DNA of 64,000 nt. Origin: Schizochytrium sp. TIO01 (Eukaryota > Protista > Bigyra: Labyrinthulomycetes). Positions 31,640 to 53,713 of this stretch are shown in pieces. Location: contig SMSO01000014.1 in NCBI GenBank assembly GCA_004764695.1, positions 4,350,845 to 4,414,844 on the forward strand, given 5' to 3'. The position numbers and the translations under genes are program-made. The notes beneath the pieces were generated by a model. It made no database searches. It saw nothing but the letters and a program-made list of their open reading frames with translations, and was not told the DNA's origin. Within the stretch, counting starts at the first letter, position 1, and each line of letters starts with the position of its first letter.

Positions 31640-32604
31640 GTTACTAAGCTCGTGGGGATAGGTTGACGAGCCTTATTAGGTTTGAATTTCGGTCAGTCGA
31701 TGATTTTAACCTACGTACTTACTTACATACTGTCGTCTTACTTACAACTCTCTTCCGTACTTACTTTCTTACTTTTTTACTTACTACTTACCCTATTCGC
31801 TTCCATACGAACTCGTCATCAACCCACCGCAAGGTCTACTAATCACTCCTCCTTCGTTTTGGACCTTGGACGGACCTATTATCAACGTGCCAAGATTCAA
31901 TACGACAATCAATTACATCAACCTGCTTCAATCTCTCACTCGCTCAACCTTCCATTAAAAATAAAAAAAGAACAAAAGCAAAACTAAATCTATCAGATAT
32001 AACAAACAAATAGCTGCCACAAAGAAAAATATGTCCTCCTCCTCCTTGTTTGATCTACTCTTTTAGATCAATACAGAGATATATAATTTTTTAATATTTC
32101 GATCGAATACAAGTGTCACAGTGTTTTTTTCCCGAAAACATACCCGTTTATGACACGTTTGCTTGAACAGCATGCGAAATGCTTTTGGTTTTCTTTCTCT
32201 CTGCATTGCACTACAATATAATCATATCGCAATTTGATTTGTGCTAACCCTTAGTTGCGCCCTCTTTGGATGTACAATAAGGCCTGATTTAGCACCCGCA
32301 GATATGCTACAAGCAACTAGCCAGATAGTGCGAACCGAAAATTTAGAAAGCAATTAAATATGCAATGACGAGTGTACTCAGATCTATACAAAGTCTCTTG
32401 CTGCTTGCAGACCCCATGACTTTTCACTAGTTCTACATTTTTTAATATCCCTGATGCTCTGACCTTTCTTCAAACATGGCTACCTCAGCTGATTTCCTCT
32501 TTTCCAAGTACAAGACTTTCATGAATCGCATAACCTCATCAGTACCCCGCCCTTTTTCTTTTGTTGATTATCAAGTACTTAGTACATGCCATATGGTGTC
32601 GTAG

Positions 32605-32646
<42 letters not shown>
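32605..32646 (+). repeat. A42 homopolymer upstream of the polycystin-like gene
   Basis: 42 consecutive A. Confidence 0.95.
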
Positions 32647-32651
<5 letters not shown>

Positions 32652-32759
32652 ATGAAAAACTTTGAAGATGGAAAGAGAGAACAAAATCTAGAGCCCAAAG
32701 CGACGTGTGCCGAATGGCCAGCAAGCAAACCATTACCTGTACGCTCATCCTCAGCCGAC

Positions 32760-35700
32760 ATGGAGCTGGCGATGCTACGCCGTGCAGTCCTTCAGGGAAC
32801 ACAACAACTCTCGAGCATCCGCAGACAGCTCGAAGACGTCGAGGACGAGATCTTAGCAGTCGAGGACTTCTTGCAACACGAACCAGCCGCAGAACTGACA
32901 TCCGACGTCTCGGCACAGCTTGACGCCCTCGAAGCAGTAGGCAGCGACGCTTTCACATCTTCATTCACATCTGCGCCCATATCTGGTGCGAATCTTTATG
33001 ACCAACTACAACAACAACAACAAAATCTTCACCACAGACTAGCCCAGAGAAACCTGCGTGGACGCTCCAGTACGAGCAGTACAGGCCCGAGTCAAGAAGA
33101 GAAAAGAGCTCTCACGCTAGAACTGCTTAACCAACGCCTTTTGGCAACCCTGGGTGACAACGGAGATAAAGAAAGTCTACCTGTTTGCAAAGCTCTTCAC
33201 GGACTGCAGGCGACACGGACTCGGCCGAAAGAACTTCATCAAAGAGGCGAGGCCAGAGCCCTTCTTACCGGTGAGCAACGCGGAGATCGACATCCATACC
33301 GACTCACAATATTCTCAGGTGAAGAGGCAACGCTAAGTTATACTTTCAATGTGGATGATGAAACAACGTTTGCTATGGTCCTTCAACGTATCTGCGAATG
33401 CTGGGCTGTCGACGCTAAAAAATTCCATTTGTCCGCCAACTCAGCGACAGAAAGCGGAGATTTCGTTCCACTAAGGTTCCTTCCCTCTGACTCTGTCATC
33501 TCGCGCCTCGAAGAGCTCAAGTATGATGTCACACGCGGGTTTGGGTGCAATGGGCTCACATCTTCGCAGTTTGCCAGCAAAGTTTACATGCTTCCACCAG
33601 TCTACCTCATGAGCAGGGGGCGGTCCTTGGAGGACCGCCACCTTGAGGAAAATAACCCTAACTCCGAGCGCCATGTCATGTCTTACGATGATGCGAGATC
33701 GGTTCTGACCACAGGCATACGAGAACAGAGCCTTCGACGCCTCTTTCTGAAAATTGACGCTCAACATCATTTCGTAGCCCCAGGCGACGATCGGCAGGAT
33801 TGCGGCGTGATTACTTTCGAAGGCTTTCTTCAAGTCATCAAGGGATACTTTGAGGGCAATTTTTTCGACAGAGCATCCCTCACACTGCTATTTACCGAGG
33901 AACTCCAGCTGGTCAAAGTTGCTGAAAATTTTCGGCACAGAGAAGATAACGCGGGATCTTTTGCATCAGCTCAGCAATTGCGAAATATTCAGCAACTCGA
34001 GCAAGAGCGCCTCTTTGTTCAATTACCCCACAGCCAGGCATCATTTAGTTTGCAGCCACTCTTGAAAACTGAAATGGTTGAACAGGATGACCAAACCTAT
34101 GAAGTCATCGACTTCGAAGCTTGCAAACGTATCGTATGGCATCTTGGAAGCGCTCAGCGAATCCAAGAGCGAAGACTTGCTCAAGGCGTCTTGCAAAGCG
34201 CAGAGAATGGAAGAGATGATAGCAACCTCTTCCCGCACGAATCAACTCACTTCCCAGAAAGTGGCGATAGCCGAGGCCATGAACCTCTGAGCCCAGCACG
34301 GGTATACTCGTGGATGCTTCACATCAGAGTTCTTATTGATCAAGAAAATAATGAAGCTACAATCACATCACGTAGGTATCGCGGTGCGAGCGTGAGTGGA
34401 CTCGGCAATCTTGTCGACCTTCCCACCCGCCGTCTGGATATGGAAACCTTTCGAGCAGCCTTACATCAAGCAGTTGCAATCGATGATGATCTCATTAGAC
34501 GATGGTGGGTTCAGTACTTTCAACGCACCAATGAACTGGTAAAAGCCGAAGCATTTGCCACAGCTTGGCAAGGAATGCGCATGCGTCAAGCGTACGACAT
34601 GCCTATTTCAATAGGAGAAGCTGTAGATCGCGCTGTTTTAGCTTTTGAAGAAGAACTTCGTCAAGCTACAATTTTTCGAAAAGGGCAAAAGCCCTCGTCA
34701 AGTCGCGTGCGTACATGTGTCGATATTTTCATCTGCCTGATATCCATTGGCTTGATCTATGCAATTCTTTTTCTTGAGATTCAGCCTCGGCGCCTCAGTC
34801 GAATTTCTCGTCAGTACTCACGTGAGCTTCTAAGTGCAGATACGTATTGCTACTCAACAACCGAGGTTGGTATTATACAAGACTCAGTTCCAACGCTGTT
34901 TGAAAATATTGCTCAAGGAGGATGCATTTGGGGCTTTGTCGACGGCCCATTGTATGACCTCTACTTCTTACAAGCTTCACGGGCCGCTGACATCGAAGAA
35001 GAGCAAGATGACTTTTCTGCGACGCAGGCTCAAGATGACTTGTACTGGAAGACCCTCATGTACAACCGTTTTGTACCTGAAGTTGTCACAATACGCCAGC
35101 TCGTGGTCAATCAATCAACGTGCACAGTGTCAGCAAATGACATCCCACCTTCTAGTACATTTTCTGCTCAAGGTTGTTTCGGAAGTTATAGTGATGCACA
35201 TCGACGCACCACAGATCTTCAACTAAATATGAGCCTGTTGTCCAATAGCACGGATCCAGCGCCATACATAGCCGCTTCACAGTGGCGTGAGCTTAAATTT
35301 TTTGATACATTCAAAGGCCAGTTCGCTGCGTACGATGGCTCGGGATATGTATTTTCGCTTGGTGGGCTCGACGATTCTCTTTTGGGTGAAAACGCGACAT
35401 TGGCTGAACGAGTGGATGCGGCAAAGGTTTACTGGCGTGAAGCAGTACAAAATTTGATGAATCTTCAATGGTTTCAAACGGGAGCTCGTGCAATTATCAT
35501 CAACATTGGCCTCATTAACCCCAATGTCAATCTCTACACCAATCTGCAGATCACCTTCGAGGTGTCGGATACGGCACTTGTTCATTCTAGTATGTCACAA
35601 CTTTCATTCAATGTTGATGTTGAGTCCACAGTGACCGGGAATGGTTTCGGTGCCGCATTCATTTTACGTTGGGTACTTTTGGCCGTCTTGGTCGCAGCGT

Positions 35701-37013
35701 TTTCAGTTGAAATTTACCTAACGCATCAATGTAACCAAGCAATCGCAGCCACCAAAGTTCGCAACGAAAATCAAGTGCGAACAAGCCAACTGCGGAAAAA
35801 TACAGTAAATCATCTCGCTCCCAGCAGCATGTCTTTTCGGCCTTTAAGTGAAGTAACTTTTAATGCCCCAATCATACGAAACGCGGAAAATGATTCTGAA
35901 GCAAGACTAGATGGAAACCTTGCTGGTAATAATGATGATGATGAAGGTAAAGAAGATAGTGAAGAAGAGAAAGAAGAGAGAGCGAACACACGTCGTGTAT
36001 CTAATTCGTTGAACTGGATGTGGACAAGTAAGCGGTTTTGCAGTGGCGTTTGCCGGACAGTTTGCCAGTCCTCTTTATTATTGCTTTCTCTATGTATAAT
36101 TCTGTGGGTTGCTGCCACCGTCGGTATTTCCTACACTTTCATCAGAAACGAGATTCGTAAAGAGTTCGCGCAGGATCTACCTCTCAGTGCATGGAATGGC
36201 GTTACCATGTGGCAGCAGTATATGCGCATAGCACACTTCGACGCCCTTACCCTTATTTTACTCACTTGCAAAAGTCTTATCCTTCTGAATCTATTCTCAC
36301 GTACAGCTATTGTGCTGCAAATGCTCAAGGAGGGCTTTGTTCACATCGTACTATTTGTGGGGGTGCTGTTTTTGACAGTGTGTGTCTTTGCTGGATTTAT
36401 GATGACTTCTAATCTCAGCGTAATTCTCAACATGAAGCACTATGGCACGTCGTTCATTGTGACAATGGCGTCGGCGTGCCATTTTGGCCTTCACGAGCAG
36501 CTTCGTCAGGTGGGCAATCCCGAGGTCTCGGCCCTGACTTACCTCTTTGTTTTATTTTTTGACATGTCTATTATTTCATTGCTCAGCATCGCCACTGCGA
36601 TACTATACCATTTTTATATGTCGCAGGTGCGTAAGGCAGAAGCAGCGGAAATTGTCTTGGCTCCTAAACGGGCTTCGCTTTGGTCAAGATTTGTACAGCA
36701 TTGCTGTAAGGGCTGCGTACGCCCAGAGTCAATGATGAACACAGTGTTTGAGGCCCAACCTCCTCGGCTTCGACGTGGGATTAGTTCTGCTGCATTTACG
36801 ACGAGCCGCCGGGACTCTATGGCGTCGAATTCGTCGCCAGGATTTTTGCCGAGAGCATCTTCGAATATTTCAGGTTCACAGTCTATGATTCATGATGAAA
36901 CTGAACCTCCGCATCTACAACTTGCCCGCTTGCTCGGGCATCCCGCGACTAGTAGTACTTCAAATTCAATGCAGGAGGTTCCTTCCATTGAGCTCTCGTC
37001 AAAGGAATTGTAA
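32760..37013 (+). CDS. Polycystin-2/TRPP-like cation channel subunit with long cytosolic N-terminus
   Basis: S1 at ~34717-34780 is followed by TOP-domain motifs TIRQLVVNQSTC, GCFGSYS, GQFAAYDGSGYVFSL and LQWFQTGARAIIINIGLINPNVNLY..ITFEV (compare PKD2 RQLRV, Y.GGGY, WLDRGTRAVFIDF..YNANINLF), then S2-S6 ending LLSIATAILYHFY. Start placed at ATG 32760, downstream of the A42 tract; the ORF track starts at 32586. Confidence 0.85.
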   Translation: MELAMLRRAVLQGTQQLSSIRRQLEDVEDEILAVEDFLQHEPAAELTSDVSAQLDALEAVGSDAFTSSFTSAPISGANLYDQLQQQQQNLHHRLAQRNLRGRSSTSSTGPSQEEKRALTLELLNQRLLATLGDNGDKESLPVCKALHGLQATRTRPKELHQRGEARALLTGEQRGDRHPYRLTIFSGEEATLSYTFNVDDETTFAMVLQRICECWAVDAKKFHLSANSATESGDFVPLRFLPSDSVISRLEELKYDVTRGFGCNGLTSSQFASKVYMLPPVYLMSRGRSLEDRHLEENNPNSERHVMSYDDARSVLTTGIREQSLRRLFLKIDAQHHFVAPGDDRQDCGVITFEGFLQVIKGYFEGNFFDRASLTLLFTEELQLVKVAENFRHREDNAGSFASAQQLRNIQQLEQERLFVQLPHSQASFSLQPLLKTEMVEQDDQTYEVIDFEACKRIVWHLGSAQRIQERRLAQGVLQSAENGRDDSNLFPHESTHFPESGDSRGHEPLSPARVYSWMLHIRVLIDQENNEATITSRRYRGASVSGLGNLVDLPTRRLDMETFRAALHQAVAIDDDLIRRWWVQYFQRTNELVKAEAFATAWQGMRMRQAYDMPISIGEAVDRAVLAFEEELRQATIFRKGQKPSSSRVRTCVDIFICLISIGLIYAILFLEIQPRRLSRISRQYSRELLSADTYCYSTTEVGIIQDSVPTLFENIAQGGCIWGFVDGPLYDLYFLQASRAADIEEEQDDFSATQAQDDLYWKTLMYNRFVPEVVTIRQLVVNQSTCTVSANDIPPSSTFSAQGCFGSYSDAHRRTTDLQLNMSLLSNSTDPAPYIAASQWRELKFFDTFKGQFAAYDGSGYVFSLGGLDDSLLGENATLAERVDAAKVYWREAVQNLMNLQWFQTGARAIIINIGLINPNVNLYTNLQITFEVSDTALVHSSMSQLSFNVDVESTVTGNGFGAAFILRWVLLAVLVAAFSVEIYLTHQCNQAIAATKVRNENQVRTSQLRKNTVNHLAPSSMSFRPLSEVTFNAPIIRNAENDSEARLDGNLAGNNDDDEGKEDSEEEKEERANTRRVSNSLNWMWTSKRFCSGVCRTVCQSSLLLLSLCIILWVAATVGISYTFIRNEIRKEFAQDLPLSAWNGVTMWQQYMRIAHFDALTLILLTCKSLILLNLFSRTAIVLQMLKEGFVHIVLFVGVLFLTVCVFAGFMMTSNLSVILNMKHYGTSFIVTMASACHFGLHEQLRQVGNPEVSALTYLFVLFFDMSIISLLSIATAILYHFYMSQVRKAEAAEIVLAPKRASLWSRFVQHCCKGCVRPESMMNTVFEAQPPRLRRGISSAAFTTSRRDSMASNSSPGFLPRASSNISGSQSMIHDETEPPHLQLARLLGHPATSSTSNSMQEVPSIELSSKEL

Positions 37014-39269: not shown

Positions 39270-40325
39270 ATGTTGAGCGCCGCTTCCCGCACATGCCTTC
39301 TCATGGGCTCTTCGACTCTTGCCTCGAGCAACAGCGGCTTCCGTCTGGCGCTGCGTCGCTCCAAGGTGACCGCTGCGATGGTCAAGGAGCTCCGTGAACG
39401 TACGAGCTCCCCGATGATGCAGTGCAAGAAGGCACTCAGCGACCCTGAGGTGGACGGTGACATGGAGAAGGCCATCGAATGGCTGCGCAAGCAAGGTGTT
39501 GCTCAGGCGGCCAAGAAGTCCGGCCGTGCCACGAACGACGGACTTGTGGGCGTTGCATCTTCTGATGACCGCCGCCGCGCTGTCCTGGTAGAGGTCACGA
39601 GCGAAACTGACTTTGTTGCCCGGAATGATCTCTTCCAGAAGCTCGTATTTGATGTCGCATCCATCGCACTCGAGTCCGGCGCTGCCGACGCTAAGGCGCT
39701 CGCCGAAACCGAAATGAGCGGCGCGCCCGTATCCGCAGCACTCACTCAGGCTGCTGCCACACTCGGAGAAAACATTGCTCTCAAGTCTTCTCACCAGCTC
39801 GCTGTGGCGAATGGCGTTATTGGCATCTACCTCCACAACAAGATGAGTGAGACCGCCTGCAAGCAGGGCGCTGCTGTCGCGATTGAGGCCGACGCCAGTC
39901 TTGATAGCCTCGATGCCTCCGCTCGTGAGAGCCTTCAGACACTTGCTGATAAGCTTGCCCTGCAGTTGGTTGCTGCACAGGCCCTCTTCCTCGAGGACGT
40001 GCCGAAGGAGTACATTGCAAAGGAGCGCGAACTTGAGAAGGAACGCCTTCGCAACGAGGCTCTGGAGCGTGCCGGAGACAAGGAGGTCGACGAGGACGTG
40101 CTCGAGAAGAGAGTATCCAAGAAGGTGGAGAAGATTATTAAGGGACTTAAGGATGAGCAGGTGCTGCTTAACCAGAAGAGCTTTGTTCCGGAACACCAGG
40201 GAGCCAAGATCAGCGCCCTTCTGACCAAGGCCTCTAAGGAGAACAAAGTCAACTTGACCATTAAGTCGGCGGCCAGATTCCAGGTTGGAGCCGAAGAGGT
40301 CATCCTCACACCAGCGGCCAACTGA
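39270..40325 (+). CDS. TSFM: Mitochondrial translation elongation factor Ts
   Basis: VTAAMVKELRERTSSPMMQCKKAL (UBA-like), AIEWLRKQG, EVTSETDFVARN, LGENI, LLNQKSF, ARFQVG. Presequence. Confidence 0.96.
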   Translation: MLSAASRTCLLMGSSTLASSNSGFRLALRRSKVTAAMVKELRERTSSPMMQCKKALSDPEVDGDMEKAIEWLRKQGVAQAAKKSGRATNDGLVGVASSDDRRRAVLVEVTSETDFVARNDLFQKLVFDVASIALESGAADAKALAETEMSGAPVSAALTQAAATLGENIALKSSHQLAVANGVIGIYLHNKMSETACKQGAAVAIEADASLDSLDASARESLQTLADKLALQLVAAQALFLEDVPKEYIAKERELEKERLRNEALERAGDKEVDEDVLEKRVSKKVEKIIKGLKDEQVLLNQKSFVPEHQGAKISALLTKASKENKVNLTIKSAARFQVGAEEVILTPAAN

Positions 40326-41290: not shown

Positions 41291-44200
41291 TCACTCATAC
41301 ACCAGAAAGATGGAAAACTCATCATCACTCGAGGGAAGGTCCCATACGCTTGTTGAATTCAAGGCTACAATTTGGCTCTCATATTCCAAGTAAATATCAT
41401 CATTACTTGAAATTGCCACTTTCAATACTGCGGGCCGATCAACTTCGTTACTACTTGAGCTACTCACCGCCGTACCATTTGAAAGTATGCTTAAGAAGTT
41501 CTCATCTTTGAAGCGGTATCCGTAGAAACCTCCGACCGGGTCTACAATAAAGATGATATTCGATGCAGCAGCAGAAAGACGAGCGAGGTCTTTCGCCCCA
41601 CTTGATGTACTCTCAGATTGCAGAATCGAAGGGTACTGTAAATCGTAGCGAGTGCAGTTATCATCTGTGTTAGAGATGCCACACACCACCAGCTCATCAG
41701 ACGGATACAATGCATAAAGGCGCAACTCATCAGCACTTAATCGAACATCGTAATAATCACTCGTTGAGGTGGTAGATGAAGCAAGGTTCGGAATGATGAA
41801 TTCAACGATTCTCTCCGTCGTGAATATTATAATATCACCTGTTGATGCATCAACCACAGCTATTCGTCCATCAGAAATGAAACACACTGCACCAGGTTGA
41901 GAAAGTTCTACACTAGAGAGGTGGAACCAGCTTCTTAATCTCCACTCCTCATCAAAAGCCACAACACGGTTTGACGCTGCGTCAGCCACGTAAGCTGAAG
42001 GCCAGGCAAGGTGATCGCTATCTATAGAGTAGAGCGCACGAGCAGCTTTCGAACCTCCACCGCACGGTGAGCCATCCGAACAGTATGAAGTACAACGGCA
42101 TATACAAGTAGACACTATCCCCTCAGCATTACATACAGGAAGCATGTTGCTATAGTACGCCGGCATTTTAATGCATACGTCCGTATCACAAGCTATTCCA
42201 GAACTGCTTGTCCAACAGCTCGAACCATCTTGGTCAGACTCGTAGTGAATAATACTATCTGTAGCGGGAAGTGTTAGCAAACACTCGCATATATGCGTTT
42301 GGATTTTGAACAGATTGAAGTACTTGTATTTGGATCCTAGTGTCTTGCAATATGCTGCACATTTAGCGGGAGTAGGATCCGTCATATTCTTCTGTCTTGT
42401 TTCTGTAGTAAAAGTAGATGCGTCGCCAGATGCACATCCCAAGTATACGTACGAAGGCAAATCGAGCGAGTCTGCCTTGGATACACTCACCACTGAAAAT
42501 TTGTCGGGTTCTATGACAAGTGTGGTGCTGTTGGAAGACGTATTAAAGAGAAAGACCCCAGAATTTTCACCTCCAAGTAAGAATGACGGGCTATCTGCAT
42601 TGTCATCATCATCATCATCATCATCAGTAGCAACAACAACTTCCTCGCAATATTCCCAACGTACATTTGGGTTCGTGGTAAAACACCATGCTCCGTTCGG
42701 GTCATTGTTTGGATTTCTACACTTGTTATGCCTACCCAAGCCTGGAGCTGCCACATTAACTAGAATGTCACATTCCGTGCCTTTCATTGCAGTCGAGACA
42801 TTCAGTTCATGATATCCGATCGGAGGGCAAAACCTCTTATTAAGTAGCTCGCTCTGCGTCGAACCATCTGCGAGAGACATGTAGTTATTCACGTAGGGAA
42901 ACCCGCAAGGAAGTCCTGGATCATCTGTATCCGTAGTATTGCAAAAGCCCTTATTTGTTTGATAAGTATTGTAAGCATGTGCGTGTGGAATTTGCTTATT
43001 CCAAGCTTGACATTCTAGACCAGAGAACGTTGTGGTTTTGTTTGACAAATCCGTATCAGTGTTGCTGCTCCTTGCACTTGCACTCAAACGCCGACCCTCC
43101 GATTGTTCAGCTTGAATTCGAGTTGCATTTCCGCACCAGTCTTCGTCGGACGTAAAGTCACTCTCCGAGGTAATTGTTGGATCATTTGGGCAAACATCAT
43201 AACAGTCAAGAACTGTATCATTGTCGGAGTCTAAGGAATCGCATGTGGAGCAACTGTCCCCAGTCCATCCTTGCGGACAGCTTACGCGAAAAGGAAAGCA
43301 TGACGAAATTATAGCAGACGAATCATCGGACAGTGTGCATACAGGTTCCAGAGGGCATGAAGTTTGACTAGTTCCAGTCTCCACGAACACACAAGCATAA
43401 TATGAACCAGGTGTGCTTGGCACAGGAGCCGGCATCAAGTAGTAGCCTTCATCTGATTGCAAATAGGTACTACTCAATTCCACAACATCCACAGAAGCCT
43501 CTTTAGCACAGCGCGCTGAAGTGTCCAGAGTTCCACTCCCTTGCAAAAGCCCTATGTTAACCAAATCAGAAGTGTTTGGCAAAATGATTAACGTAGAGCT
43601 CTCTGGATTATCCTCGCTATAGAATGAGATATTAAAGAGAGTGAGAAACTCAACAGCACTTGAATCGCCTCCCTCCATTTCTAGATACATGGTAGGAGCA
43701 TCACGTGGCCATACACTGTCCTCAACAGAGCAGCAGAATACGCGAGAAGTCTCGTTCGGATCCAAGCATGTGGTTTCTTTCAAACCCAACGCAGAAGAGC
43801 AACTGCAGGTATTATTCAGGAGCCCTGAAAATTCAGACGTGAAACAATATCCATCTTCCTCAGTGATGAATTCTGACCCCATACCGCAGGTGTGTTCACC
43901 ATTTTCGCGAGTGTTTAGGCACTGACCAGCTATTTTATTTGCTGGAATACAGTCAGTGCTATTAGTTTCGTTTTTACAAGATGCTTCAAAGTCATAAATT
44001 GGTTCGTCCACGTTAGGAAATCCAACAAGCACATAGAGACGACAATCTTCATCCTCAGCACATAAATCGCAATGCTCAAGTGTATTCACAAACTTAGAAC
44101 TGTCACTCAGCAAGCTTGACCATGAATCCTTACAAGACTTCGGCTTGTTACCATCGTGCCAGCAACGCTCACCAGAATAGGATGCATTCGCTTGGCATCC

Positions 44201-47200
44201 TCCATAATTGCAAACGGGCCAAATACTAGACTGGTTCCTAGAGTCATTAGCAGCACAGCAATTTCCCGACTCGTTATCACAGAATGTCCACCCGCTTTCT
44301 TCGTTTGCGGCACACATACTAGCATCCAAAACATCCTCTATAGAAAGTAACTCTAGATCTGAAGCAGAGCAAAGCATCCGACCCTCGTCGAAACACGTTC
44401 TGCTAGCCTCTTCGTAATCAGCTTCTCCATAGCATGTACCATTCTCATTTGTAACGTGTACCTTTGTGCGGGGGATCGCAGAGAGCATCGTCGCAGAAGA
44501 CTTGTATTGTGATTCGTTGCTCGCAAAATTTTGAAAGCTGTCAGCTTCAGCATCTGTCTTGCCAACTAAATAGACTTGTTGCAAAGTAGGGCTTGACGTG
44601 GGATATTCAGTGGGCCTTTTTGTGGGCACCCGAGTAGGGGCAGTGACAGAAAAGGCCGCAAACGGGCCGGTAGGCCTTGGTGTTGGGCTTACAGTGGGTT
44701 TTGGAGTGGGCCTCGGAGTAGAGGTGGTTGCATAGGTGGGATTACTTACCAGTTGAGTCTGCCCTCCACAACGAATACTGAGTCCAGCATCACTTGCAGG
44801 ACATACAGACATAAGTCCAGGAGAATTTGTGCTATACATCATAGCATTGGCCACTTGGATTGGATTTGAAGTGCCTGAAATGCATGCCATCCGTGCAAAT
44901 TGGGAACTGTTTCGAAACTCACCTCCAATCCAGCTTCCGGGCCAGGTTTGATAAGCGTCCATATCGTTGTAAGTGCGTAATCCTACTGAGTAATTTGAAA
45001 CACCGTTACCGTCTATAGTGAGCTGAGCTCCCGTCAGTTCAGTGGGGAAATTGGATGTAGGCCAGTTGACGTTCCTAACGGAGAATGTGTAAACCACCTC
45101 GTATATATTATTTAGGAGAATGCCTTCAGCACCGTCTTGGTTATTATCCCTATACTGCTTGAACACTACATCGCCACACCTCGGTGTTTGGTTGAAGACT
45201 CGACAGTCTTTCAAGGTATCGTTGGTGTGAAACTTGACTTCGAGGTCAAGATCTACTTCATCAACAGACCAAGTTAAGCAAGCGCGCATAGCTCCTTCCT
45301 CAAGTTTAGATCGCGTCCAAAAGGTTAGCAAACTGCTCTGTCCCTCGCTTTCACTGCAAAGTGAATAATCACCACACTCGCATACCCCTTCAGCGTCGCA
45401 TGTGATCGTAGTGGTCACAGATTCAATACTTGAACCTGAAACATTCACACTAAAGCTACCGGTGGACGCAGGAAGTGCGCATGTTGTCGTTACAGATACA
45501 ATGTTGCAGATCGATTGAGAAGTTTCACTCGTGATAGTAATTGTAGAATTCAACAACTCTGAACTATTACTCTTAGCAACGCCTCCGCAGAAACTCTCTC
45601 GAACTGCGAAAACAGCGGTAGCAGAAGTAGGCGACGATGTGGGTTCAGCTGTTGGTCCATGTGTCGGTGTATCTGTAGGGGCGACGCTAGGACTTAAAGT
45701 TGGAGACTGAGTTGGGCTTTGTGTTGGTGTATCTGTAGGGGCGACGCTAGGACTTAAAGTTGGAGACTGAGTTGGACTTTGTGTCGGTGTATTTGTAGGG
45801 GCAACGCTAGGACTTAAAGTTGGAGACTGAGTTGGACTTTGTGTCGGTGTATCTGTAGGGGCAACGCTAGGACTTAAAGTTGGAGACTGAGTTGGACTTT
45901 GTGTCGGTGTATCTGTAGGGGCGACGCTCGGACTTAAAGTTGGAGACTGAGTTGGACTTTGTGTCGGTGTATCTGTAGGGGCGACGCTCGGACTTAAAGT
46001 TGGAGACTGAGTTGGACTTTGTGTCGGTGTATCTGTAGGGGCGACGCTCGGACTTAAAGTTGGAGACTGAGTTGGACTTTGTGTCGGTGTATCTGTAGGG
46101 GCGACGCTCGGACTTAAAGTTGGAGACTGAGTTGGACTTTGTGTCGGTGTATCTGTAGGGGCGACGCTCGGACTTAAAGTTGGAGACTGAGTTGGACTTG
46201 GTGTCAATGATTGTAGATTAATGTTGCCAAAATCTACAGTTTGGTCTGACCCTAAAGTCATTCCAGAACTGTAGTTATATCCTGGAAACCGAAGACGAAC
46301 AGTTACATTTTGAGCTAGACTCATTGATAATGGTGTTATCATTCGCAGGTCACCGTACTGAACTTTGAGATTGAGCACAGAACCAACTTCACTCGAATTA
46401 CAATCACTCTGTTGAAAACAAAAATTCATGACGTCGACCTCTGCTGGAATATTGTTGGCCTTCTTGTTATCTAAGGTCACCTTTCCTAAGATGTTATAGA
46501 ATGGGCTGTCTGCGAGGTTGATAAGAGCAGTTTTATATGTAGAGCCAGATATTGCTTTCCGTTGACATGGTTCTGCAACACTGGTCAACGTGCTTGTTAC
46601 TCTAAGCGTTGTTTCTGCAGGTCGATTTGGTCCAGGTATACATATTTTAGCGCTAGCGAGGGCTGAACGCATGACTTCCAAAGAGCCTATAATTGTATAT
46701 GACTTCAGTTGGTTTTCAACGTCAGTCAAAATGTTGATAGATGACGAGTCGTCCACAAATGTCACATTTGACCATACCGGAACACTCATCTCTACAGTTA
46801 CATTCGAACAAGTACTTGGTGCAGGACATTGTTTAGAACCCCTTGACTCAGGCTTGATTATTGGACTTGCGCTGCCCAACGCAGTACAGCGCCCAGTGTA
46901 ATCAATAGCAGTTGCGTTAGCATCAACCGATAGTATTATACTACCTGTGCAAACATCAGAAATGCTATCGTCTGAATCAAGTAAATCATCGCATAACGGA
47001 CTTTGACAAATACCATCAATACAGTCAGCAGAATAAGGATAACCACTGCAGTCGATTCCGCTTGCACAAGACATACCAAGCTCACACGGTTCACAGTATA
47101 AACCGCCGCAAATTGTCGATTCATCAACAGTACTATCCGAAGAGCTAGCACAAGATACACATATGGAATCCACACATAAACTTGATTCACAGTCACGATG

Positions 47201-50200
47201 CTGTGTGCATGTTTGACCATTTGCACATGCTACCCCGAACAATGAACATTGACCACCGCAGTCGGTGTCTGACTCCCACGCATCCTGAATCTGATTGGGC
47301 GTTATGCAGTTGAGAAACCGGCTTTTCCCAAGAACTGCACATATGTTCCCGTCACACAGCCCAGTCTGGCAATCATCATTTGATGTGCAAGAGTGATTCA
47401 CTGGGCACAAACGTCGGCATGGTGATCCGCAGACACCGTTCTCGGACAAAGAAGTGAAGCATTCATCAATGAGGCTACCATCACTTGAAGTTGTTGGTGC
47501 TGAAGTTGTAGCAACATAATCATAGTCTGATTGATCAGCACAAGTGCCATTAATTTCTAATCCAGATTCACAAAATGGACCATTTCCGATCCCCACAAAA
47601 TACCCACGCTTACAGAAGATGTTCCACTTGAAGCACTGACTACTACTCATAATTTCAAAACATGTTTCTGAAGAGATAGACTCGCATTCATCATCCATTG
47701 TATCTGAGGATATGTCACATGTCTTAGTGTTCCTGGAGCAGATTGTGGTTAAACAATCAGCAGAGCTTTCACACGTTTTGTTGACAGCACAAGCAGGAGC
47801 GGACTGCCCGCCTCCACAGTCTATATCTGTTTCACTTCCTGTCTTCTTGAGATCCTGGGGACCTTCGCAAAGAGAAGTGTTTAAGTTGCAGGTCGCATCA
47901 TAACCAAGTTGTTTTTGACAGTCTGAAGCAGTTTTGCAGCCCTCGCCAGGTCCACAGAGAAAGTTAAGTCTTCTACAAAAAGTTCCACCACCATCTGTGC
48001 AGGTTTCATTTCCATTCTGAAAGTTGTCAGTGCAAGATATACATTTATTTTCAAAACAGAGGCCACTATCGCAGTCAGAGTTGGAAGTGCAGATCTTACT
48101 ATCGTCGCACAAGGAGCACTCTGATCCTCCACAGTCAACATCAGTCTCATCCCCATTTGTTATATTATCATAACAGGAAACACAGACACCTTCATAACAA
48201 TAGTTGCTTTCACAATCTCTGTCCAATTCACAATTCTCACCAGAACCACAGAGCGAATATCCGAGCAGAGAACAAGCGCTACCACACCCGGTTTCGCACT
48301 TGTCTTTCAAGTAGCTCTCATCACTGAGCTTATCGAGTCTGTAGGAAGTGCAGATTCGTGTAGAATTTTCAGTTGATGTGGTTGAGTTGCAGGAACAAAA
48401 GCCCCAGGCGTCAGGATTATTATCAGGATTGTAAATAAACGATGTGGCACACCAGTAAGAGTTCTGTACTGAAGCTGTCGTGCTGGTTGATGAGTATTGT
48501 GTCCAATTTGCGGGTGGAATGTCAGCACCTTTCAAACAACTGGAATATAAGCTTCCATTATAGCTGAACGGAAAGACACAAGGTTTACCGTGAGATGACT
48601 CAGGCCCAAGATTAGATGTGTAACATGCAGGAGCTGCACAATTAAGTGTCGTACAGCTAGCATTTGAAGTGCATACCTCACCAATCCCCAGTGCATATTC
48701 CATGTCTGAAAGCAACTCTTCGTAATACGCAGTCTGATTGAAGCTTGTCACCTGCAAAGAGATATCAGAGGAGGATGTTGCGCTAACGCAAAGTCCGTTT
48801 GCGCAGATAAGTCCATCTTCGCAGTCCGCATCACGGGTGCAACCTTCATTCAAAGAACATCTGTCACCAATAATAGCGCACTCCTCACCTTGGTATCGAC
48901 ACGGAGTTGATGTTGGACTTGTATCTTCGCCACTACATGAAATTTCTACGCACACTCCACCACCGTCGGTGCAAGTCTCATTGTCATCTTGAATGCCATT
49001 GCTGCATGACGTAGATTCTACCTCATCACATATTTCACAACGTCCGGTAGTTTGACTGCAACAATTTTTACAGTCGTTGTCTGTGTCACAAGTGTCACCA
49101 TCATTGCAGAGAACACCACATGTCTCCCCACAATCAACTCCTGTTTCTGGCCCATCTTGTTGATTATTAATACAGCAGTCCTTTGACACTTGTGCACAAA
49201 ACGTAGATGCGAGGCACTCTTCTTCGCTAGAAGCATTCGCTGGACAAGTGTCGGGAAGTGACATATCAAAGTTCATAATGCTATCGTAGTTTACGACCTT
49301 TGCAACACTTGAATAGCCCGTGACGACAACTCCTACAATAACAAGAAGTATCAATACTACAAAAACGTACAAAAGGTAAGGTGTATGCGTGTGGCGCAAT
49401 GAAGGATGGCGTTTACTCTTGCGATGTTTCTCGTTCTTTTTAATATTGTCTTTCCTCCGTTGTTGCTTATTAAATTCAACCATTGCTTCCGTCTGTTCCT
49501 CAAACAGTTCAATAATGGCCAGATCTGCATTTTCTGCAACGTGATTTATGATAAATGAGAGTGCAGTGGCAAGAACAATGCATACAGTTAGCAATGTGGC
49601 TGCTGCCGAAAGCAACAAAATATTGAGCTGCGATATAAATGTTGATAGCCCTGAGCAGCAGTCATGGTTAAGGCAGCCATAATAATTTGTGTAGTCCCCA
49701 TCCCATGCCAGCACTGGATTACGCTCCCATACAAAGGCACCTCGGGCTTTATTGGAGGAACCTTCTCCGCAGTACACTGTCTCGCCAGGTCCTTCAGTAA
49801 TATAATAAGAATTTAATGCGGTTGGAATCTGGCCTTGTCCGATGTACTTGGTGCATCCCAACGAGTTAGAGAAGAATTCCTCTGAAATACTGCTCATGAT
49901 AAGCTTGCAGTTATTTTGAACAAGTGATGCCAAATCAATACGCATAATAGTGACTAGCTGAAAGATACACATGGGGAAGACAATGATAAGCACTAAAATA
50001 CGAGCAACACGTAGTCGGCGTAAAGACTCAATCCAAACCGCCCGAAAAGCAAATATAAAGCTGAGAATAAGTGTGATGTCGCAGCAAAATACCATCATCG
50101 GGATCCATATAGGAATGGTGTTCACAACACGCGAGGTTTCAAGAACACGGTTTACAACCCATATGGATGCTACTGCTTGTGCACCAGCTACAGCGGACGC

Positions 50201-51244
50201 GATCATTGCAATAACTTCTGCAAGGCTTTGCATCATTTCATAGACACTGACAATAATAGTACTAGCAATAAGACTAACGATTTGGAGTGGTAGCAAGGCG
50301 AGGCCAGTATACGTGGCCGCATGGAGAAGAGCTTGCGACGCACCCGATGAGTTAAAGGCTGAGCTAGGTAAAGTAAAAGAAGCCAATATGCATGTTATAA
50401 TAAGCGCAAAACTGTTGGCGTAAGCAGCGGCTTGAATAACGTGCTGGCCAACTGTTTCCATGCCGTCACTAGACTCTGTTACTTTCTGGATGCCCGCAGG
50501 CACAACAACGCTGGTCAGTGCGAGGCGATATTTTGCGTCTTTCCACATATATGTTTCCTGCATGACATCTTGATAAACGCGTTGTGCTCCATAGTAGGCA
50601 ATTGCATTTGTTATAAATATTAGCGCTCCCAATACTATTCCAAATAAGGCTTCTCGCGAAATATTTCTTCGAAAGGCTAAAGAGCTCAAGATGGCTAGGA
50701 TAATGCCGCCGACAATTAGAATTATGCTGATGATTTTGAGAAAGTTTTGCATACGCCGTGTAACTTTATGAACTCTACGTTTTCTCCGAAGCTCGTCTAA
50801 GATTTTGATGATATCTGCTGGATTCCGGGGACCGGTTTTGTCTGTAGACTTTGGGTCCGCTTCGTTACTCTCCCAAGCTCCATCCTGTGTCGTTTTGCTA
50901 CGTCGAGGTTCCTCTACATTTGCAAAAGCATCTGCGACTGATCGTAAAAGATGAGCAAGCTCAGACCCAAAGCCAAGGTCTAATAGCATATCTGGTTTAA
51001 GAAATGGGATTTGCCAAAGCTTACGGACATTGTGTTCATACAAGGTGTCTGCAAGTTTCTTTGCTTCATCTTCTGGTGGCTCAGGCGAGACTGCTTTGCC
51101 TACAAATGCTCCGTTGCGAGCCTCCTTGCGCACTTTGAGCAGAACAGCAGCGTTCACAACCTCGTCCACCTCGCTTTGTCTGTGCAACCGGAGGAGGCTT
51201 GAGACGTTTGCATTCGCCTCGGGAGCACTGTTCTCCCCCAGCAT
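41291..51244 (-). CDS. Giant (3317 aa) multi-pass membrane protein with mosaic Cys-rich extracellular C-terminus
   Basis: Uninterrupted 9.95-kb ORF. About 9 hydrophobic helices at ~50745-49320. Recognisable FN2, kringle, WSC, TSP3/EGF and NHL-like motifs, ETDVDCGG repeats, PT repeats and many N-x-S/T sequons. Confidence 0.93.
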   Translation of the reverse strand: MLGENSAPEANANVSSLLRLHRQSEVDEVVNAAVLLKVRKEARNGAFVGKAVSPEPPEDEAKKLADTLYEHNVRKLWQIPFLKPDMLLDLGFGSELAHLLRSVADAFANVEEPRRSKTTQDGAWESNEADPKSTDKTGPRNPADIIKILDELRRKRRVHKVTRRMQNFLKIISIILIVGGIILAILSSLAFRRNISREALFGIVLGALIFITNAIAYYGAQRVYQDVMQETYMWKDAKYRLALTSVVVPAGIQKVTESSDGMETVGQHVIQAAAYANSFALIITCILASFTLPSSAFNSSGASQALLHAATYTGLALLPLQIVSLIASTIIVSVYEMMQSLAEVIAMIASAVAGAQAVASIWVVNRVLETSRVVNTIPIWIPMMVFCCDITLILSFIFAFRAVWIESLRRLRVARILVLIIVFPMCIFQLVTIMRIDLASLVQNNCKLIMSSISEEFFSNSLGCTKYIGQGQIPTALNSYYITEGPGETVYCGEGSSNKARGAFVWERNPVLAWDGDYTNYYGCLNHDCCSGLSTFISQLNILLLSAAATLLTVCIVLATALSFIINHVAENADLAIIELFEEQTEAMVEFNKQQRRKDNIKKNEKHRKSKRHPSLRHTHTPYLLYVFVVLILLVIVGVVVTGYSSVAKVVNYDSIMNFDMSLPDTCPANASSEEECLASTFCAQVSKDCCINNQQDGPETGVDCGETCGVLCNDGDTCDTDNDCKNCCSQTTGRCEICDEVESTSCSNGIQDDNETCTDGGGVCVEISCSGEDTSPTSTPCRYQGEECAIIGDRCSLNEGCTRDADCEDGLICANGLCVSATSSSDISLQVTSFNQTAYYEELLSDMEYALGIGEVCTSNASCTTLNCAAPACYTSNLGPESSHGKPCVFPFSYNGSLYSSCLKGADIPPANWTQYSSTSTTASVQNSYWCATSFIYNPDNNPDAWGFCSCNSTTSTENSTRICTSYRLDKLSDESYLKDKCETGCGSACSLLGYSLCGSGENCELDRDCESNYCYEGVCVSCYDNITNGDETDVDCGGSECSLCDDSKICTSNSDCDSGLCFENKCISCTDNFQNGNETCTDGGGTFCRRLNFLCGPGEGCKTASDCQKQLGYDATCNLNTSLCEGPQDLKKTGSETDIDCGGGQSAPACAVNKTCESSADCLTTICSRNTKTCDISSDTMDDECESISSETCFEIMSSSQCFKWNIFCKRGYFVGIGNGPFCESGLEINGTCADQSDYDYVATTSAPTTSSDGSLIDECFTSLSENGVCGSPCRRLCPVNHSCTSNDDCQTGLCDGNICAVLGKSRFLNCITPNQIQDAWESDTDCGGQCSLFGVACANGQTCTQHRDCESSLCVDSICVSCASSSDSTVDESTICGGLYCEPCELGMSCASGIDCSGYPYSADCIDGICQSPLCDDLLDSDDSISDVCTGSIILSVDANATAIDYTGRCTALGSASPIIKPESRGSKQCPAPSTCSNVTVEMSVPVWSNVTFVDDSSSINILTDVENQLKSYTIIGSLEVMRSALASAKICIPGPNRPAETTLRVTSTLTSVAEPCQRKAISGSTYKTALINLADSPFYNILGKVTLDNKKANNIPAEVDVMNFCFQQSDCNSSEVGSVLNLKVQYGDLRMITPLSMSLAQNVTVRLRFPGYNYSSGMTLGSDQTVDFGNINLQSLTPSPTQSPTLSPSVAPTDTPTQSPTQSPTLSPSVAPTDTPTQSPTQSPTLSPSVAPTDTPTQSPTQSPTLSPSVAPTDTPTQSPTQSPTLSPSVAPTDTPTQSPTQSPTLSPSVAPTDTPTQSPTQSPTLSPSVAPTNTPTQSPTQSPTLSPSVAPTDTPTQSPTQSPTLSPSVAPTDTPTHGPTAEPTSSPTSATAVFAVRESFCGGVAKSNSSELLNSTITITSETSQSICNIVSVTTTCALPASTGSFSVNVSGSSIESVTTTITCDAEGVCECGDYSLCSESEGQSSLLTFWTRSKLEEGAMRACLTWSVDEVDLDLEVKFHTNDTLKDCRVFNQTPRCGDVVFKQYRDNNQDGAEGILLNNIYEVVYTFSVRNVNWPTSNFPTELTGAQLTIDGNGVSNYSVGLRTYNDMDAYQTWPGSWIGGEFRNSSQFARMACISGTSNPIQVANAMMYSTNSPGLMSVCPASDAGLSIRCGGQTQLVSNPTYATTSTPRPTPKPTVSPTPRPTGPFAAFSVTAPTRVPTKRPTEYPTSSPTLQQVYLVGKTDAEADSFQNFASNESQYKSSATMLSAIPRTKVHVTNENGTCYGEADYEEASRTCFDEGRMLCSASDLELLSIEDVLDASMCAANEESGWTFCDNESGNCCAANDSRNQSSIWPVCNYGGCQANASYSGERCWHDGNKPKSCKDSWSSLLSDSSKFVNTLEHCDLCAEDEDCRLYVLVGFPNVDEPIYDFEASCKNETNSTDCIPANKIAGQCLNTRENGEHTCGMGSEFITEEDGYCFTSEFSGLLNNTCSCSSALGLKETTCLDPNETSRVFCCSVEDSVWPRDAPTMYLEMEGGDSSAVEFLTLFNISFYSEDNPESSTLIILPNTSDLVNIGLLQGSGTLDTSARCAKEASVDVVELSSTYLQSDEGYYLMPAPVPSTPGSYYACVFVETGTSQTSCPLEPVCTLSDDSSAIISSCFPFRVSCPQGWTGDSCSTCDSLDSDNDTVLDCYDVCPNDPTITSESDFTSDEDWCGNATRIQAEQSEGRRLSASARSSNTDTDLSNKTTTFSGLECQAWNKQIPHAHAYNTYQTNKGFCNTTDTDDPGLPCGFPYVNNYMSLADGSTQSELLNKRFCPPIGYHELNVSTAMKGTECDILVNVAAPGLGRHNKCRNPNNDPNGAWCFTTNPNVRWEYCEEVVVATDDDDDDDDNADSPSFLLGGENSGVFLFNTSSNSTTLVIEPDKFSVVSVSKADSLDLPSYVYLGCASGDASTFTTETRQKNMTDPTPAKCAAYCKTLGSKYKYFNLFKIQTHICECLLTLPATDSIIHYESDQDGSSCWTSSSGIACDTDVCIKMPAYYSNMLPVCNAEGIVSTCICRCTSYCSDGSPCGGGSKAARALYSIDSDHLAWPSAYVADAASNRVVAFDEEWRLRSWFHLSSVELSQPGAVCFISDGRIAVVDASTGDIIIFTTERIVEFIIPNLASSTTSTSDYYDVRLSADELRLYALYPSDELVVCGISNTDDNCTRYDLQYPSILQSESTSSGAKDLARLSAAASNIIFIVDPVGGFYGYRFKDENFLSILSNGTAVSSSSSNEVDRPAVLKVAISSNDDIYLEYESQIVALNSTSVWDLPSSDDEFSIFLVYE
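45661..46200 (-). repeat. Coding tandem repeat, 9 x 60 bp, encoding (SPTQSPTLSPSVAPTDTPTQ)n mucin-like PT stalk
   Basis: Nine consecutive 60-nt units are near-identical; the four units at 45901-46140 are identical. Confidence 0.98.
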
Positions 51245-53713
51245 AGCCGTTCACTTTAGTTTACTAATTGTTGCGAGGGTTTCTCGGCGGCTCCCTGGCA
51301 AGCCCAGAAGTTCTGCACAATGCTTTCTGCAAGAGTTCACCAAATCTTGAAAGAAATATACATCTGTTGCCTTTCTTTAGGCCAATAATAAATCTTACCA
51401 CTGTCCTAGGTACACTATTCTGCAAGATAGCGCCTAGCTGCGTTATTGTTTGTAGCCCAAACTCTGCTCGCATTTCTATTATGTGATACTGTATATATCC
51501 TACTATTACTGTTCTGTCCGTTATAGTCTTTTTCCGGTAGACCATCCGACGTCTTATCAGCTAGGGAAATTAAGAGTTTGCCTTTTCTCAGCGTGGTATG
51601 AACTGCCAATCGAGAGGAGGAGGAGAGAGCTTGTTAGAAAACTAGAGTGCCCTCAAAACTACTGTTGTAAGAGAGACGAACCCTTTAATGAGGCATGCTC
51701 TGTGTCACGTCCACAACGCTTTACTTTTGGGTCACTTCTTTGAAGTAAAATAGGCCTATTTATAAAGAAATTCTTCAAAAACCTCTTATTTGCAAAGAAG
51801 AAGCTGGTAAAAGCTGAGAGCGAGAAAGTAAAACGATTGTACTTCTCAGTTTGAAGCACGCGTACACGGTGCGTTTGAATTTCTGTCAATTGCGCAATTC
51901 GAATCTTGTTCTGAGCTTTGTTGCTATGGTAGATCTAGGATGCATAATGCTTCGTAAATAGCAAGCGGCTGCATGTGTAGTAATTATGTCAGCGAATGCA
52001 GCACAAAAGGAGAAACTCAAGAAGGCTCTGCGCCCCGTGAAAGCGTTGGATCTTGCGCGTAGGCTTTCAAAGAGGTGGTCTTTCACTACAGTGGTTGGAT
52101 AATCCCTGAGCCGATGTTTATCTTCGGATGATGGCAAGTTTTAAAATGCTAAAGGATCTGCTGCTATCTCAATCTCGTTGGTACGAAGAAAGACGTCACG
52201 AAAAGGTCTCAGCAATCAGGGATGGAACGTTTGAGTAATCAGGAAAAGAGCATACGAATGCCCCTGTCGTGATATTGTCATTCGCTCCAATAATTAGGGG
52301 CTAGTGAAACATCGAAGCGATAATTTCAGTACGGAAGGTTTTGATTTGAGGTCTCTAAGGCAGTCAGATTTAGTTTGGGGAGGCCAATCTTACCAAGAAC
52401 TCCGCACAGATGAGCAAGCAAAATGTAAACGGAGCTTCATGTTGTAAAATCAGAGTGGCGCGCTGATGGGAGCCATGACAATGATTTGAGAGGCACCGAT
52501 CATAGATTTAGTAACAAATTGATTGATTGGTCTCTTTGTAACTATAATCTACCAATTAAGTTCCACGACTTTTGTCACGACATCCGATGACATCAAGAAC
52601 TTGTAAATTACTGGCACATGTTAACTCTCGATTACTTCTTCACGAAACGTAGGTATCTGCCTTGTTGCCTTAGCTTGTCTAAGTTTCAATGTGACTTGTT
52701 TTCTTTTTTAAAAGTCCGAGCACGCCCTCATTGTCGTGCTCCACTGGTCAGAGCAACGGAGAGGCCGAAGTTAGCAAATCATCCCAAGCCTGCATTACAT
52801 AGTCGTTGTTTATCTATTCGAAAGAGATTAATAGAGTCATGGTCTCCAGTGTTTTTTTTTTGGGGGGGGGGGGGGTGCACAATATGCAACAGCAGATTCT
52901 GCTTAGCTAGAGAAGGCTTAGTAAAACCTATCATATTCGATTGTAGTGGTTTCTAGACCTTATGTACCAACTAGGTGTCCTGCAAACAATTTTCATGTTA
53001 GAATCAAGACAATGAATGATGTGCATAAACAAAACCTTCATGACTCGAGTTATTTATTACCCAAGCAAAAAGAATTTATAGTCCATGGAGAAAGAAAGCC
53101 TTGGCAACAAAACTCTTGATAAAAATATGTTTTTGGTAGCTAAAGACAGTGTGCATTTAAAAAAAATGCACAACTGAAAGTGCTCCTTAGTTCCTCAAAT
53201 AGCTGGTATTAGGTCATTAGTGATACACATCACCCCCGTGCGCTTTTGTATACGTACAGGATATCAGAAAGCGCACGCCATGGTTTCAGGCTATGTAAAA
53301 AAAAGTTTCTCTTCATACCACTAATTTGTTCGAGTACTTCTTCAAATTATACAGTTCATCACTAGGTTTCAACTGCATTTTGTTCTATGTCAAGGCTTCG
53401 AGTTTCACCCACCTTTGTCCAGCCAAATGTATTGGAGTTTATATAAGAAGATTTCGTGCTGGAGATGTCAGTGAGCCAAGTTGTGCTTTGGCTTTAGTCT
53501 TCAGAATCATACAAGTAATATCTGCGTGCCAAAAAGAGGGTTCACCATGTCAAGGGCAGCTCACTTATTTTATTATTATTTAATTTTTGAGCTTCACTAC
53601 TAGTACTACTATAACTTGTAGGTACCTTCTTCATGTTTTACTAAATTATAATGGTAAATGTTAAAAGAAAAAACAATATGTTTATATATGTGCGTGCATA
53701 TGTATACATACAG

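Follow-up and report, generated by a model that had tools for sequence, protein, structure and literature searches.

Introduction

Tetraspanins are small four-pass organisers of the membrane that work through non-covalent partners, and known complexes with single-pass partners include uroplakin 1a/2, uroplakin 1b/3a, CD81-CD19, CD9-EWI-2, and Tspan15-ADAM10. Another group of large surface proteins, polycystin-1 and the adhesion G protein-coupled receptors (GPCRs), carries an N-terminal ectodomain behind a signal peptide, contains GAIN/GPS or REJ modules, and has 7 or 11 transmembrane (TM) helices. Here, we describe a gene of the labyrinthulomycete Schizochytrium sp. TIO01 that combines features of both groups in an unusual order. 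It lies on the minus strand of a 64,000-nt window (assembly GCA_004764695.1, contig SMSO01000014.1, positions 4,350,845 to 4,414,844 of the forward strand) and encodes a protein of 3,317 aa, hereafter the giant protein. A first-pass annotation, made from the sequence alone, had described it as an inverted receptor-like protein with a SAM-like head, about nine TM helices, and a C-terminal mosaic ectodomain. Our analysis indicates that it is probably a tetraspanin-anchored adhesion or recognition mosaic surface protein. The tandem tetraspanin-like core on which this reading is built is a new insight of this study that the first-pass annotation had missed. The coordinates of all features are collected in Table 1.

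Results

The core of the giant protein comprises two tandem tetraspanin-like units

A Kyte-Doolittle scan of the giant protein placed nine hydrophobic segments at residues 168-186, 199-217, 279-297, 314-332, 344-362, 381-399, 416-434, 542-560, and 624-642. An AlphaFold model of residues 150-660, based on a 30-sequence alignment, likewise contained nine long helices, with a predicted local distance difference test (pLDDT) score of 82 and a predicted template modelling score (pTM) of 0.78. Hydropathy and model thus agree with the nine segments proposed earlier, and the number of TM helices is odd, not even. Sequence and fold comparisons identify the first eight helices as two four-helix units in tandem, which are tetraspanin-like or tetraspanin-derived. 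Unit 2 (TM5-TM8) has the layout of a tetraspanin, with four TM helices, a predicted inner N-terminus, a small outer loop 1 of 18 aa, a basic inner loop, and a large outer loop 2 of 107 aa that contains six cysteines. Unit 1 (TM1-TM4) has an inner loop of 51 aa and no large outer loop.

Several sequence comparisons link this core to tetraspanins. The Pfam Tetraspanin family (PF00335) matched TM5-TM8 of a paralogue from the same genome (L010) over profile positions 5-220 of 225, and 10 of 18 family members were matched at E ≤ 0.1, with a best E-value of 2.3e-7. When the family profile was compared to PDB sequences, the best match was uroplakin 1b (UPK1B; E 4.8e-4), and CD53, CD9, and Tspan15 appeared below it amid generic matches. 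The genome also encodes ordinary tetraspanins, of which at least nine score above the Pfam cut-off and carry the CCG motif. When the family was aligned by hhalign to six of these canonical tetraspanins, the probability was 88% (E 3e-6), and TM5-7 fell on tetraspanin TM1-3. Taken singly, both units aligned in register with the tetraspanins of the genome (unit 2, 80%; unit 1, 69%, E 4e-5), and unit 1 showed an insertion in its inner loop. In the reciprocal direction, the family profile matched one canonical tetraspanin gene in a genome scan.

Fold searches pointed in the same direction. In an exhaustive search with VIA-align, the top match of TM1-4 was the tetraspanin uroplakin 1a (8jj5_A; Z 17.0, root-mean-square deviation (rmsd) 2.0 Å, 131 residues), and the runners-up were the tetraspanin-like sarcospan, 2.5 Z units lower, and FcεRI-β. 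TM5-8 matched peripherin-2/ROM1 (PRPH2/ROM1; Z 12.7 over 203 residues), Tspan15, and CD9. As helical bundles carry a high Z background in VIA-align, with soluble four-helix bundles reaching Z 13-14, we regard the fold evidence as backing for the sequence evidence and not as a stand-alone argument.

Some results weigh against a tetraspanin-anchored protein, and most of them would also fit a core with a new nine-TM fold unrelated to tetraspanins, its likeness being that of any four-helix membrane bundle with compositional bias. The giant protein itself has no match to Pfam Tetraspanin, and its best two relatives (31.0-31.1 bits, profile positions 2-221 of 225) stay about 1 bit short of the cut-off of 32.1 bits. 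The CCG motif is present in none of the 30 family members, which carry G-C-x4-C-C before TM8 instead. Foldseek returned no match of the core model to the PDB at E ≤ 0.001, and the TM7-TM8 loop, i.e., outer loop 2, was modelled by AlphaFold as helices and short strands. Together with the Z-values reached by soluble bundles, this leaves an unrelated fold as an unlikely alternative. It is countered by the in-register links from the full-length Pfam profile, the PDB profile search, the two hhalign comparisons, and the reciprocal genome match, and by a top fold match that is a tetraspanin with a clear lead over sarcospan. A tetraspanin-like core is therefore the reading that we follow. An hhalign comparison between unit 1 and unit 2 (probability 28%, E 6e-4) is suggestive of an internal duplication behind the two units. 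As this match is low and the CCG motif is absent throughout the family, we use the term "tetraspanin-like" and do not regard the core as a canonical tetraspanin.

The N-terminus is predicted to be inside and the large C-terminal part outside

The first hydrophobic segment starts at residue 168, and nothing hydrophobic precedes it, in agreement with the earlier statement that there is no signal peptide. The strongly basic stretch that had been noticed before the last TM segment was located at residues 593-612. To evaluate the orientation, we counted charges in the 17 family members with nine clean segments, taking the N-flank and loops 2, 4, 6, and 8 as inside. Predicted inner regions contained on average 15.1 lysine and arginine residues, versus 7.1 for the outer regions, and loop 8 was the most basic (6.3). 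Cysteines are absent from the first 200 residues of the giant protein, versus 6.6% of the 2,675 residues that follow TM9, and N-glycosylation sequons occur throughout this latter part. The same split applies to the family, with nearly Cys-free heads and tails that contain 4-14% Cys in nearly all members. Furthermore, the TM7-TM8 loop carries six near-invariant cysteines across the family, as expected of an outer loop.

The charge bias, the cysteine split, heads of cytosolic type, and tail modules of disulfide type (FN2 and kringle) support a predicted topology with the N-terminus inside, nine TM helices, and the C-terminus outside. The inverted layout with a giant C-terminal ectodomain, already suggested by the first-pass annotation, is thereby strengthened, with the family-wide spacing of the helices and the EF-hand, PLAT, and C2 domains in the heads of two relatives (see below) as additional arguments. 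By the positive-inside rule, TM9 with its basic N-flank would act like an internal type II signal anchor, in which case export of the long C-terminal part needs no unusual mechanism.

The giant protein is encoded by a single intron-free gene

The open reading frame (ORF) extends over 9,951 nt, or 3,317 codons, without an internal stop. On the 5' side of the ATG, the frame is closed by in-frame stops, the first of them two codons away. For the 5' half of the gene, we compared window positions 46001-52000 with contigs from four sequencing runs of four different studies, the RNA nature of which is a guess from their transcriptome-like size. Contigs covered 46176-51564 without any joint or indel, and 51600-52000 was empty in all four runs. 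Coverage thus stops sharply 150-320 nt upstream of the ATG, which fits a transcript. One single contig (48176-51340) bridges the 5' untranslated region (UTR), the head, and all nine TM helices and extends into the FN2 region, and another (46702-49436) joins TM9 to about 870 ectodomain residues. Between the window and the strains of these runs, 39 coding differences were found, of which 25 are synonymous and 14 non-synonymous. This synonymous excess argues that the frame is under purifying selection from the head through the core to the proximal ectodomain. A 93-aa upstream ORF (51264-51545) was considered as an N-terminal extension or signal peptide and rejected, as it lies in another frame, looks non-coding, and is not connected by any joint.

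The size and the layout are unusual and are the only points that speak for an artefact, i.e., two genes or a non-coding stretch misread as one ORF. We consider such an artefact extremely improbable, as it is contradicted by the 9,951 stop-free nucleotides, the collinear orthologues, the paralogues of the same layout, the bridging contigs, and the synonymous excess. There was also no sign in the contigs of separate transcripts for core and tail, so that the earlier assumption of a single gene holds. We conclude that the giant ORF is a real, transcribed, intron-free single gene, with the RNA origin of the runs being presumed.

A small family combines a constant core with variable distal modules

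An exhaustive HMMER search with residues 1-700 against 1.84 billion cluster representatives (E ≤ 0.001) revealed a family of 31 representatives, many of them 2,100-3,700 aa long; a word-indexed protein search with the same residues returned no relatives. The named sources are Hondaea fermentalgiana with four paralogues, records filed under Durusdinium trenchii, and a Picozoa single-cell assembly, and the other clusters that we looked up are metagenome or assembly records. All family records are "hypothetical", "uncharacterized", or nameless, except for one spurious "S-antigen". Two full-length orthologues, P0002 (3,342 aa) and P0003 (3,229 aa), are collinear with the giant protein from end to end at about 37% identity, and most cysteines are invariant. 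In most full-length members and in the four paralogues from the genome of the giant, the nine segments are spaced alike, with 90-130 aa between the seventh helix and TM8 and about 45-60 aa between TM8 and TM9. The Durusdinium records P0002, P0007, and P0009 are giant nine-TM members on 11-30-kb contigs of a dinoflagellate assembly, with P0002 sharing 38% identity with the thraustochytrid protein, and may represent labyrinthulomycete contamination of that assembly.

The 64-Mb thraustochytrid genome itself contains five core-bearing genes, including the giant. For the paralogue on contig 34, a 2,963-aa ORF with PT repeats (L020:546-9437 (+)) begins 6 nt past its end in another frame, and the two pieces presumably belong to a single gene (about 4,070 aa in total) that is interrupted by a small intron or a frameshift. 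The distal modules of the paralogues differ and include EGF_2, Ig-like, and CarboxypepD_reg-like domains, which indicates that the distal ectodomain varies on a constant anchor. A common core followed by the first DCGG repeats and by differing distal modules is what would be expected of a recognition or adhesion repertoire.

The tail is a mosaic of Cys-rich, stalk-like, and adhesion-type modules

Several modules named by the first-pass annotation were recovered. The Cys-rich E-T-x-D-C-G-G repeats and the FN2 domain embedded in them were both found, the latter well above its cut-off, and the PT stalk corresponds to a nearly perfect tandem array. The kringle passed its cut-off as well, and a profile built from the orthologues matched plasminogen in the PDB at E 3e-35. 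It is split by an insertion (residues 2766-2835; 42740-42949 (-)) that has no Pfam match and contains a P-C-G-F-P-Y stretch reminiscent of FN2. Other proposals fared less well. Of an assumed EGF plus TSP3 pair, the EGF part has no family match, and TSP3 is represented by a sub-threshold motif. The WSC and NHL/beta-propeller modules were also seen below their cut-offs only; the WSC match is the only one in the genome, and the family-bearing protein-atlas matches of the C-terminal region belonged without exception to NHL or six-blade propeller families, although they scored no higher than 0.78. We regard the presence of a WSC-, a TSP3-, and an NHL-like part as no more than probable. A lectin-like module could not be matched to any family, and the suggested DUF2135/YfaP module was reduced to a short motif, as PF09906 gave no match in a segment scan (E ≤ 5) or in a six-frame genome scan (E ≤ 1).

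The repeat region itself has no sequence relative in the PDB and no Pfam family beyond a weak match to DUF7107 (17.1 bits). The same repeats were also observed in giant ORFs elsewhere in the genome that have no nine-TM core, among them a 5,665-aa open frame on contig 31 that is full of them (G000:C31:678864-683066 (-)).

These features raise the question of whether the tail stays attached to the core. The giant protein could be a precursor from which a wall or matrix glycoprotein is shed, with the nine-TM core only escorting it through the secretory path and the ectodomain being cleaved near TM9 into the wall, scales, or mucilage. The mucin-like PT stalks, the very large Cys-rich modular tail, and the DCGG repeats in giant ORFs without a core would suit such a product. 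However, we recognised neither a protease site nor an autoproteolytic module, and every full-length member has retained core, head, and basic loop along with the tail, as would suit a permanent role in the membrane. A shed precursor thus has a small chance of being correct, and we retain a membrane-anchored surface protein as the preferred reading.

The head varies in the family, and a Polycystin-domain gene lies nearby

The head (residues 1-167) shows 42-43% identity in the two orthologues and has no Pfam or PDB match. Its AlphaFold model, based on three sequences, reached a pLDDT of 50, and the protein atlas proposed SAM clusters at scores of 0.78-0.81 only, below the level that we count as more than a lead; the earlier designation as SAM-like, which may still be right, is thus unsupported. 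Foldseek matches of the head model to haemoglobins (rmsd ~14 Å) were dismissed as meaningless in view of the poor model. In two relatives, P0031 from the Picozoa single-cell assembly and P0014 from a marine metagenome (3,197 aa), the region before TM1 contains EF-hand, PLAT, and C2 domains in place of the helical head, each of which exceeds its Pfam cut-off. As these are cytosolic module types, they argue for a cytosolic N-terminus, and they point to a Ca2+- or lipid-linked coupling.

Such heads, together with a Polycystin-domain gene about 4 kb away (32586-37013), are also what a polycystin-1-type sensor or channel subunit might show, in which the ectodomain senses force or ligands and an ion channel is gated by, or paired with, the nine-TM core. 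Against this, the TM core matches tetraspanins and not channels, a Pfam search of the giant protein identified no PKD-channel, GPS/GAIN, REJ, or 7TM_2 module, and the gene for elongation factor Ts (EF-Ts) lies between the giant and its Polycystin-domain neighbour. We rate a polycystin-type function as very unlikely and return to the tetraspanin-anchored surface protein below. The remaining ORFs of interest in the neighbourhood are a probable chance ORF antisense to EF-Ts and an ORF with a weak match to RXYLT1_C (Table 1).

Table 1. Features of the giant gene, its paralogues, and neighbouring genes. Coordinates without a prefix refer to the window, and residues to the giant protein.
Feature	Residues or length	Coordinates	Strand	Basis
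Giant ORF, complete, intron-free	3,317 aa + stop	41291-51244	(-)	Stop-free translation; collinear orthologues; no joints in contigs
Likely 5' UTR		51245-51564	(-)	Contigs of transcriptome-sized runs end at 51396-51564; none at 51600-52000
Predicted cytosolic head	1-167	50744-51244	(-)	Cys-free; helical at ~9-108, then probably disordered
Tetraspanin-like unit 1, TM1-TM4	168-332	50249-50743	(-)	VIA-align match to uroplakin 1a; hhalign
Tetraspanin-like unit 2, TM5-TM8	337-564	49553-50236	(-)	Pfam in relatives; PDB profile; hhalign; fold matches
Outer loop (EC2-like)	435-541	49622-49942	(-)	Six conserved Cys; K-Y, W-E, and G-C-x4-C-C signature; no CCG
Predicted cytosolic basic loop	565-620	49385-49552	(-)	Mean K+R 6.3 across 17 members
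TM9	~621-645	49310-49384	(-)	Hydropathy and AlphaFold model; orientation from positive-inside rule
Cys-rich E-T-x-D-C-G-G repeats, ~45 aa each	~660-1460	46865-49267	(-)	Follow TM9 in most family members
FN2 (PF00040), internal insertion	888-950	48395-48583	(-)	41.7 bits, cut-off 22.2
PT stalk	60-nt unit (20 aa) x 9.1 copies	45660-46205	(-)	Tandem array, 98% identity; Pfam PT weak
Conserved D-L-D-L-x-V module	1985-2082	44999-45292	(-)	Kept in orthologues
TSP3-like Asp-rich motif (PF02412), probable	2662-2692	43169-43261	(-)	17.3 bits, under cut-off 25
Kringle (PF00051) with ~70-aa insertion	2736-2867	42644-43039	(-)	36.6 bits, cut-off 34.3
WSC-like (PF01822), probable	2934-3016	42197-42445	(-)	17.9 bits, profile 1-74 of 82, under cut-off 27.8
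NHL-like, probable beta-propeller	~3075-3317	41294-42022	(-)	PF01436, one repeat, 17.0 bits, under cut-off 20
Paralogue	3,023 aa	L010:411-9482	(-)	Same core
Paralogue	2,902 aa	L011:349-9057	(+)	Same core
Paralogue	1,104 aa	L009:4939-8253	(-)	Same core
Paralogue (contig 34; G000:C34:4114216-4126436)	1,107 aa	L007:6217-9540	(+)	Core and DCGG repeats
Polycystin-domain ORF	1,475 aa	32586-37013	(+)	Pfam Polycystin, 35.8 bits; ~4 kb from 3' end of giant gene
Elongation factor Ts (EF_TS)		39270-40325	(+)	116.9 bits; between Polycystin-domain gene and giant
ORF antisense to EF-Ts	366 aa	39255-40355		No family match; probably chance
ORF	470 aa	56824-58236	(+)	Weak RXYLT1_C match, 20.5 bits, under cut-off

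Discussion

Proposed role at the cell surface

With a predicted cytosolic head, a tetraspanin-like core, and a modular tail outside, we infer an adhesion, binding, or sensing role and a surface location for the giant protein. In the mechanism that we propose, the head would remain in the cytosol and couple the protein to it, and the tetraspanin-like core would set its placement or clustering in membrane microdomains. Helix 9 would take the part of an internal type II signal anchor, by which everything C-terminal of it is passed into the lumen of the endoplasmic reticulum and hence to the cell surface, where the stalked, glycosylated multi-module ectodomain could bind glycans, proteins, or substrate surfaces. 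The protein would then correspond to a tetraspanin with a covalent link to a single-pass partner with a large ectodomain, of the type held non-covalently by the tetraspanins of animals. The first-pass suggestion of a place on the ectoplasmic net or the zoospore surface is a hypothetical one.

Besides the points raised for the core, the following count against this picture. The topology of the giant protein is a prediction only. From contigs, a single transcript can only be presumed, and that the runs are RNA is a guess made by the software. Moreover, animal tetraspanin partners are type I proteins and helix 9 is type II, so that the geometry of the two arrangements may differ. In view of the sequence and fold links of the core and the composition of the tail, a tetraspanin-anchored adhesion or recognition protein is nevertheless the reading that we favour.

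A bolder extension, which we put forward tentatively and would not yet bet on, is that the giant protein is a natural single-chain tetraspanin with its partner, one of a small and diversifying set of proteins that organise specialised parts of the surface membrane, such as the ectoplasmic net, and that its heads relay binding to Ca2+- or lipid-linked machinery. If this were true, it would provide Rosetta-stone evidence that the pairing of a tetraspanin with a large ectodomain is an old and general principle, found in a lineage far from animals, and it would offer a genetically tractable system to study this pairing.

Novelty and possible use

We found no paper that describes such a tetraspanin fusion, this architecture, or tetraspanins in thraustochytrids. 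In the main text of a proteome study of zoospores and vegetative cells of A. limacinum (PMC12221091), the words tetraspanin, kringle, and fibronectin do not occur. The suggestion of an undescribed class of surface protein therefore stands in so far as no described family with this exact architecture was found and all relatives are unnamed or "hypothetical"; it has to be restricted in that the tandem tetraspanin-like core is a variant of a known superfamily. To our knowledge undescribed is the fusion of two tetraspanin-like units with a ninth helix and an adhesion-type ectodomain several thousand residues long, which gives a sequence-level hint on how tetraspanin-partner units can be built. The five genes also form a candidate surface recognition or adhesion set for thraustochytrids, the attachment structures of which are poorly understood at the molecular level. 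In addition, the core profile can be used to annotate about 30 "hypothetical" protein clusters.

Comparison with known systems

Polycystin-1 and the adhesion GPCRs resemble the giant protein in that a multi-pass core carries a very large mosaic ectodomain of adhesion type, and PLAT occurs in two of its relatives. The order is reversed, however, as the ectodomain of the giant protein is C-terminal, and its core is tetraspanin-like. Teneurins and other type II giants share the cytosolic N-terminus, the uncleaved anchor, and the very large C-terminal ectodomain, but they are single-pass proteins without a tetraspanin-like core, and no homology to the giant protein was detected. Sarcospan and the MS4A proteins (CD20 and FcεRI-β) match unit 1 by fold (Z 13.6-14.5) and, like unit 1, lack a large outer loop. 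This likeness is one of fold, and in the giant protein the unit is fused upstream of a second, tetraspanin-like unit.

Tetraspanins such as CD9, CD81, CD53, uroplakin 1a/1b, and peripherin-2 have much in common with the core. Shared features are the four-helix bundle with the N-terminus inside, the short outer loop 1, the tiny basic inner loop, the large disulfide-stabilised outer loop 2, and a G-x-x-G-A-type motif that ends the second helix, and the sequence and fold links are in register. Differences apply to size, as tetraspanins comprise about 200-350 aa versus 3,317 aa, and to layout, as the giant protein consists of two tandem units, a ninth helix, and a tail of 2,675 aa. In addition, all 30 family members lack CCG and have their own six-Cys signature in outer loop 2, with predicted strands, and unit 1 differs by its missing large outer loop and its 51-aa inner loop.

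A further parallel is the complex of a tetraspanin and its partner, in which the bundle lies beside one further TM helix that bears a large modular ectodomain, and the uroplakins of such complexes are also the best sequence and fold matches of the giant protein. Unlike in these complexes, all parts of the giant protein are contained in one polypeptide.

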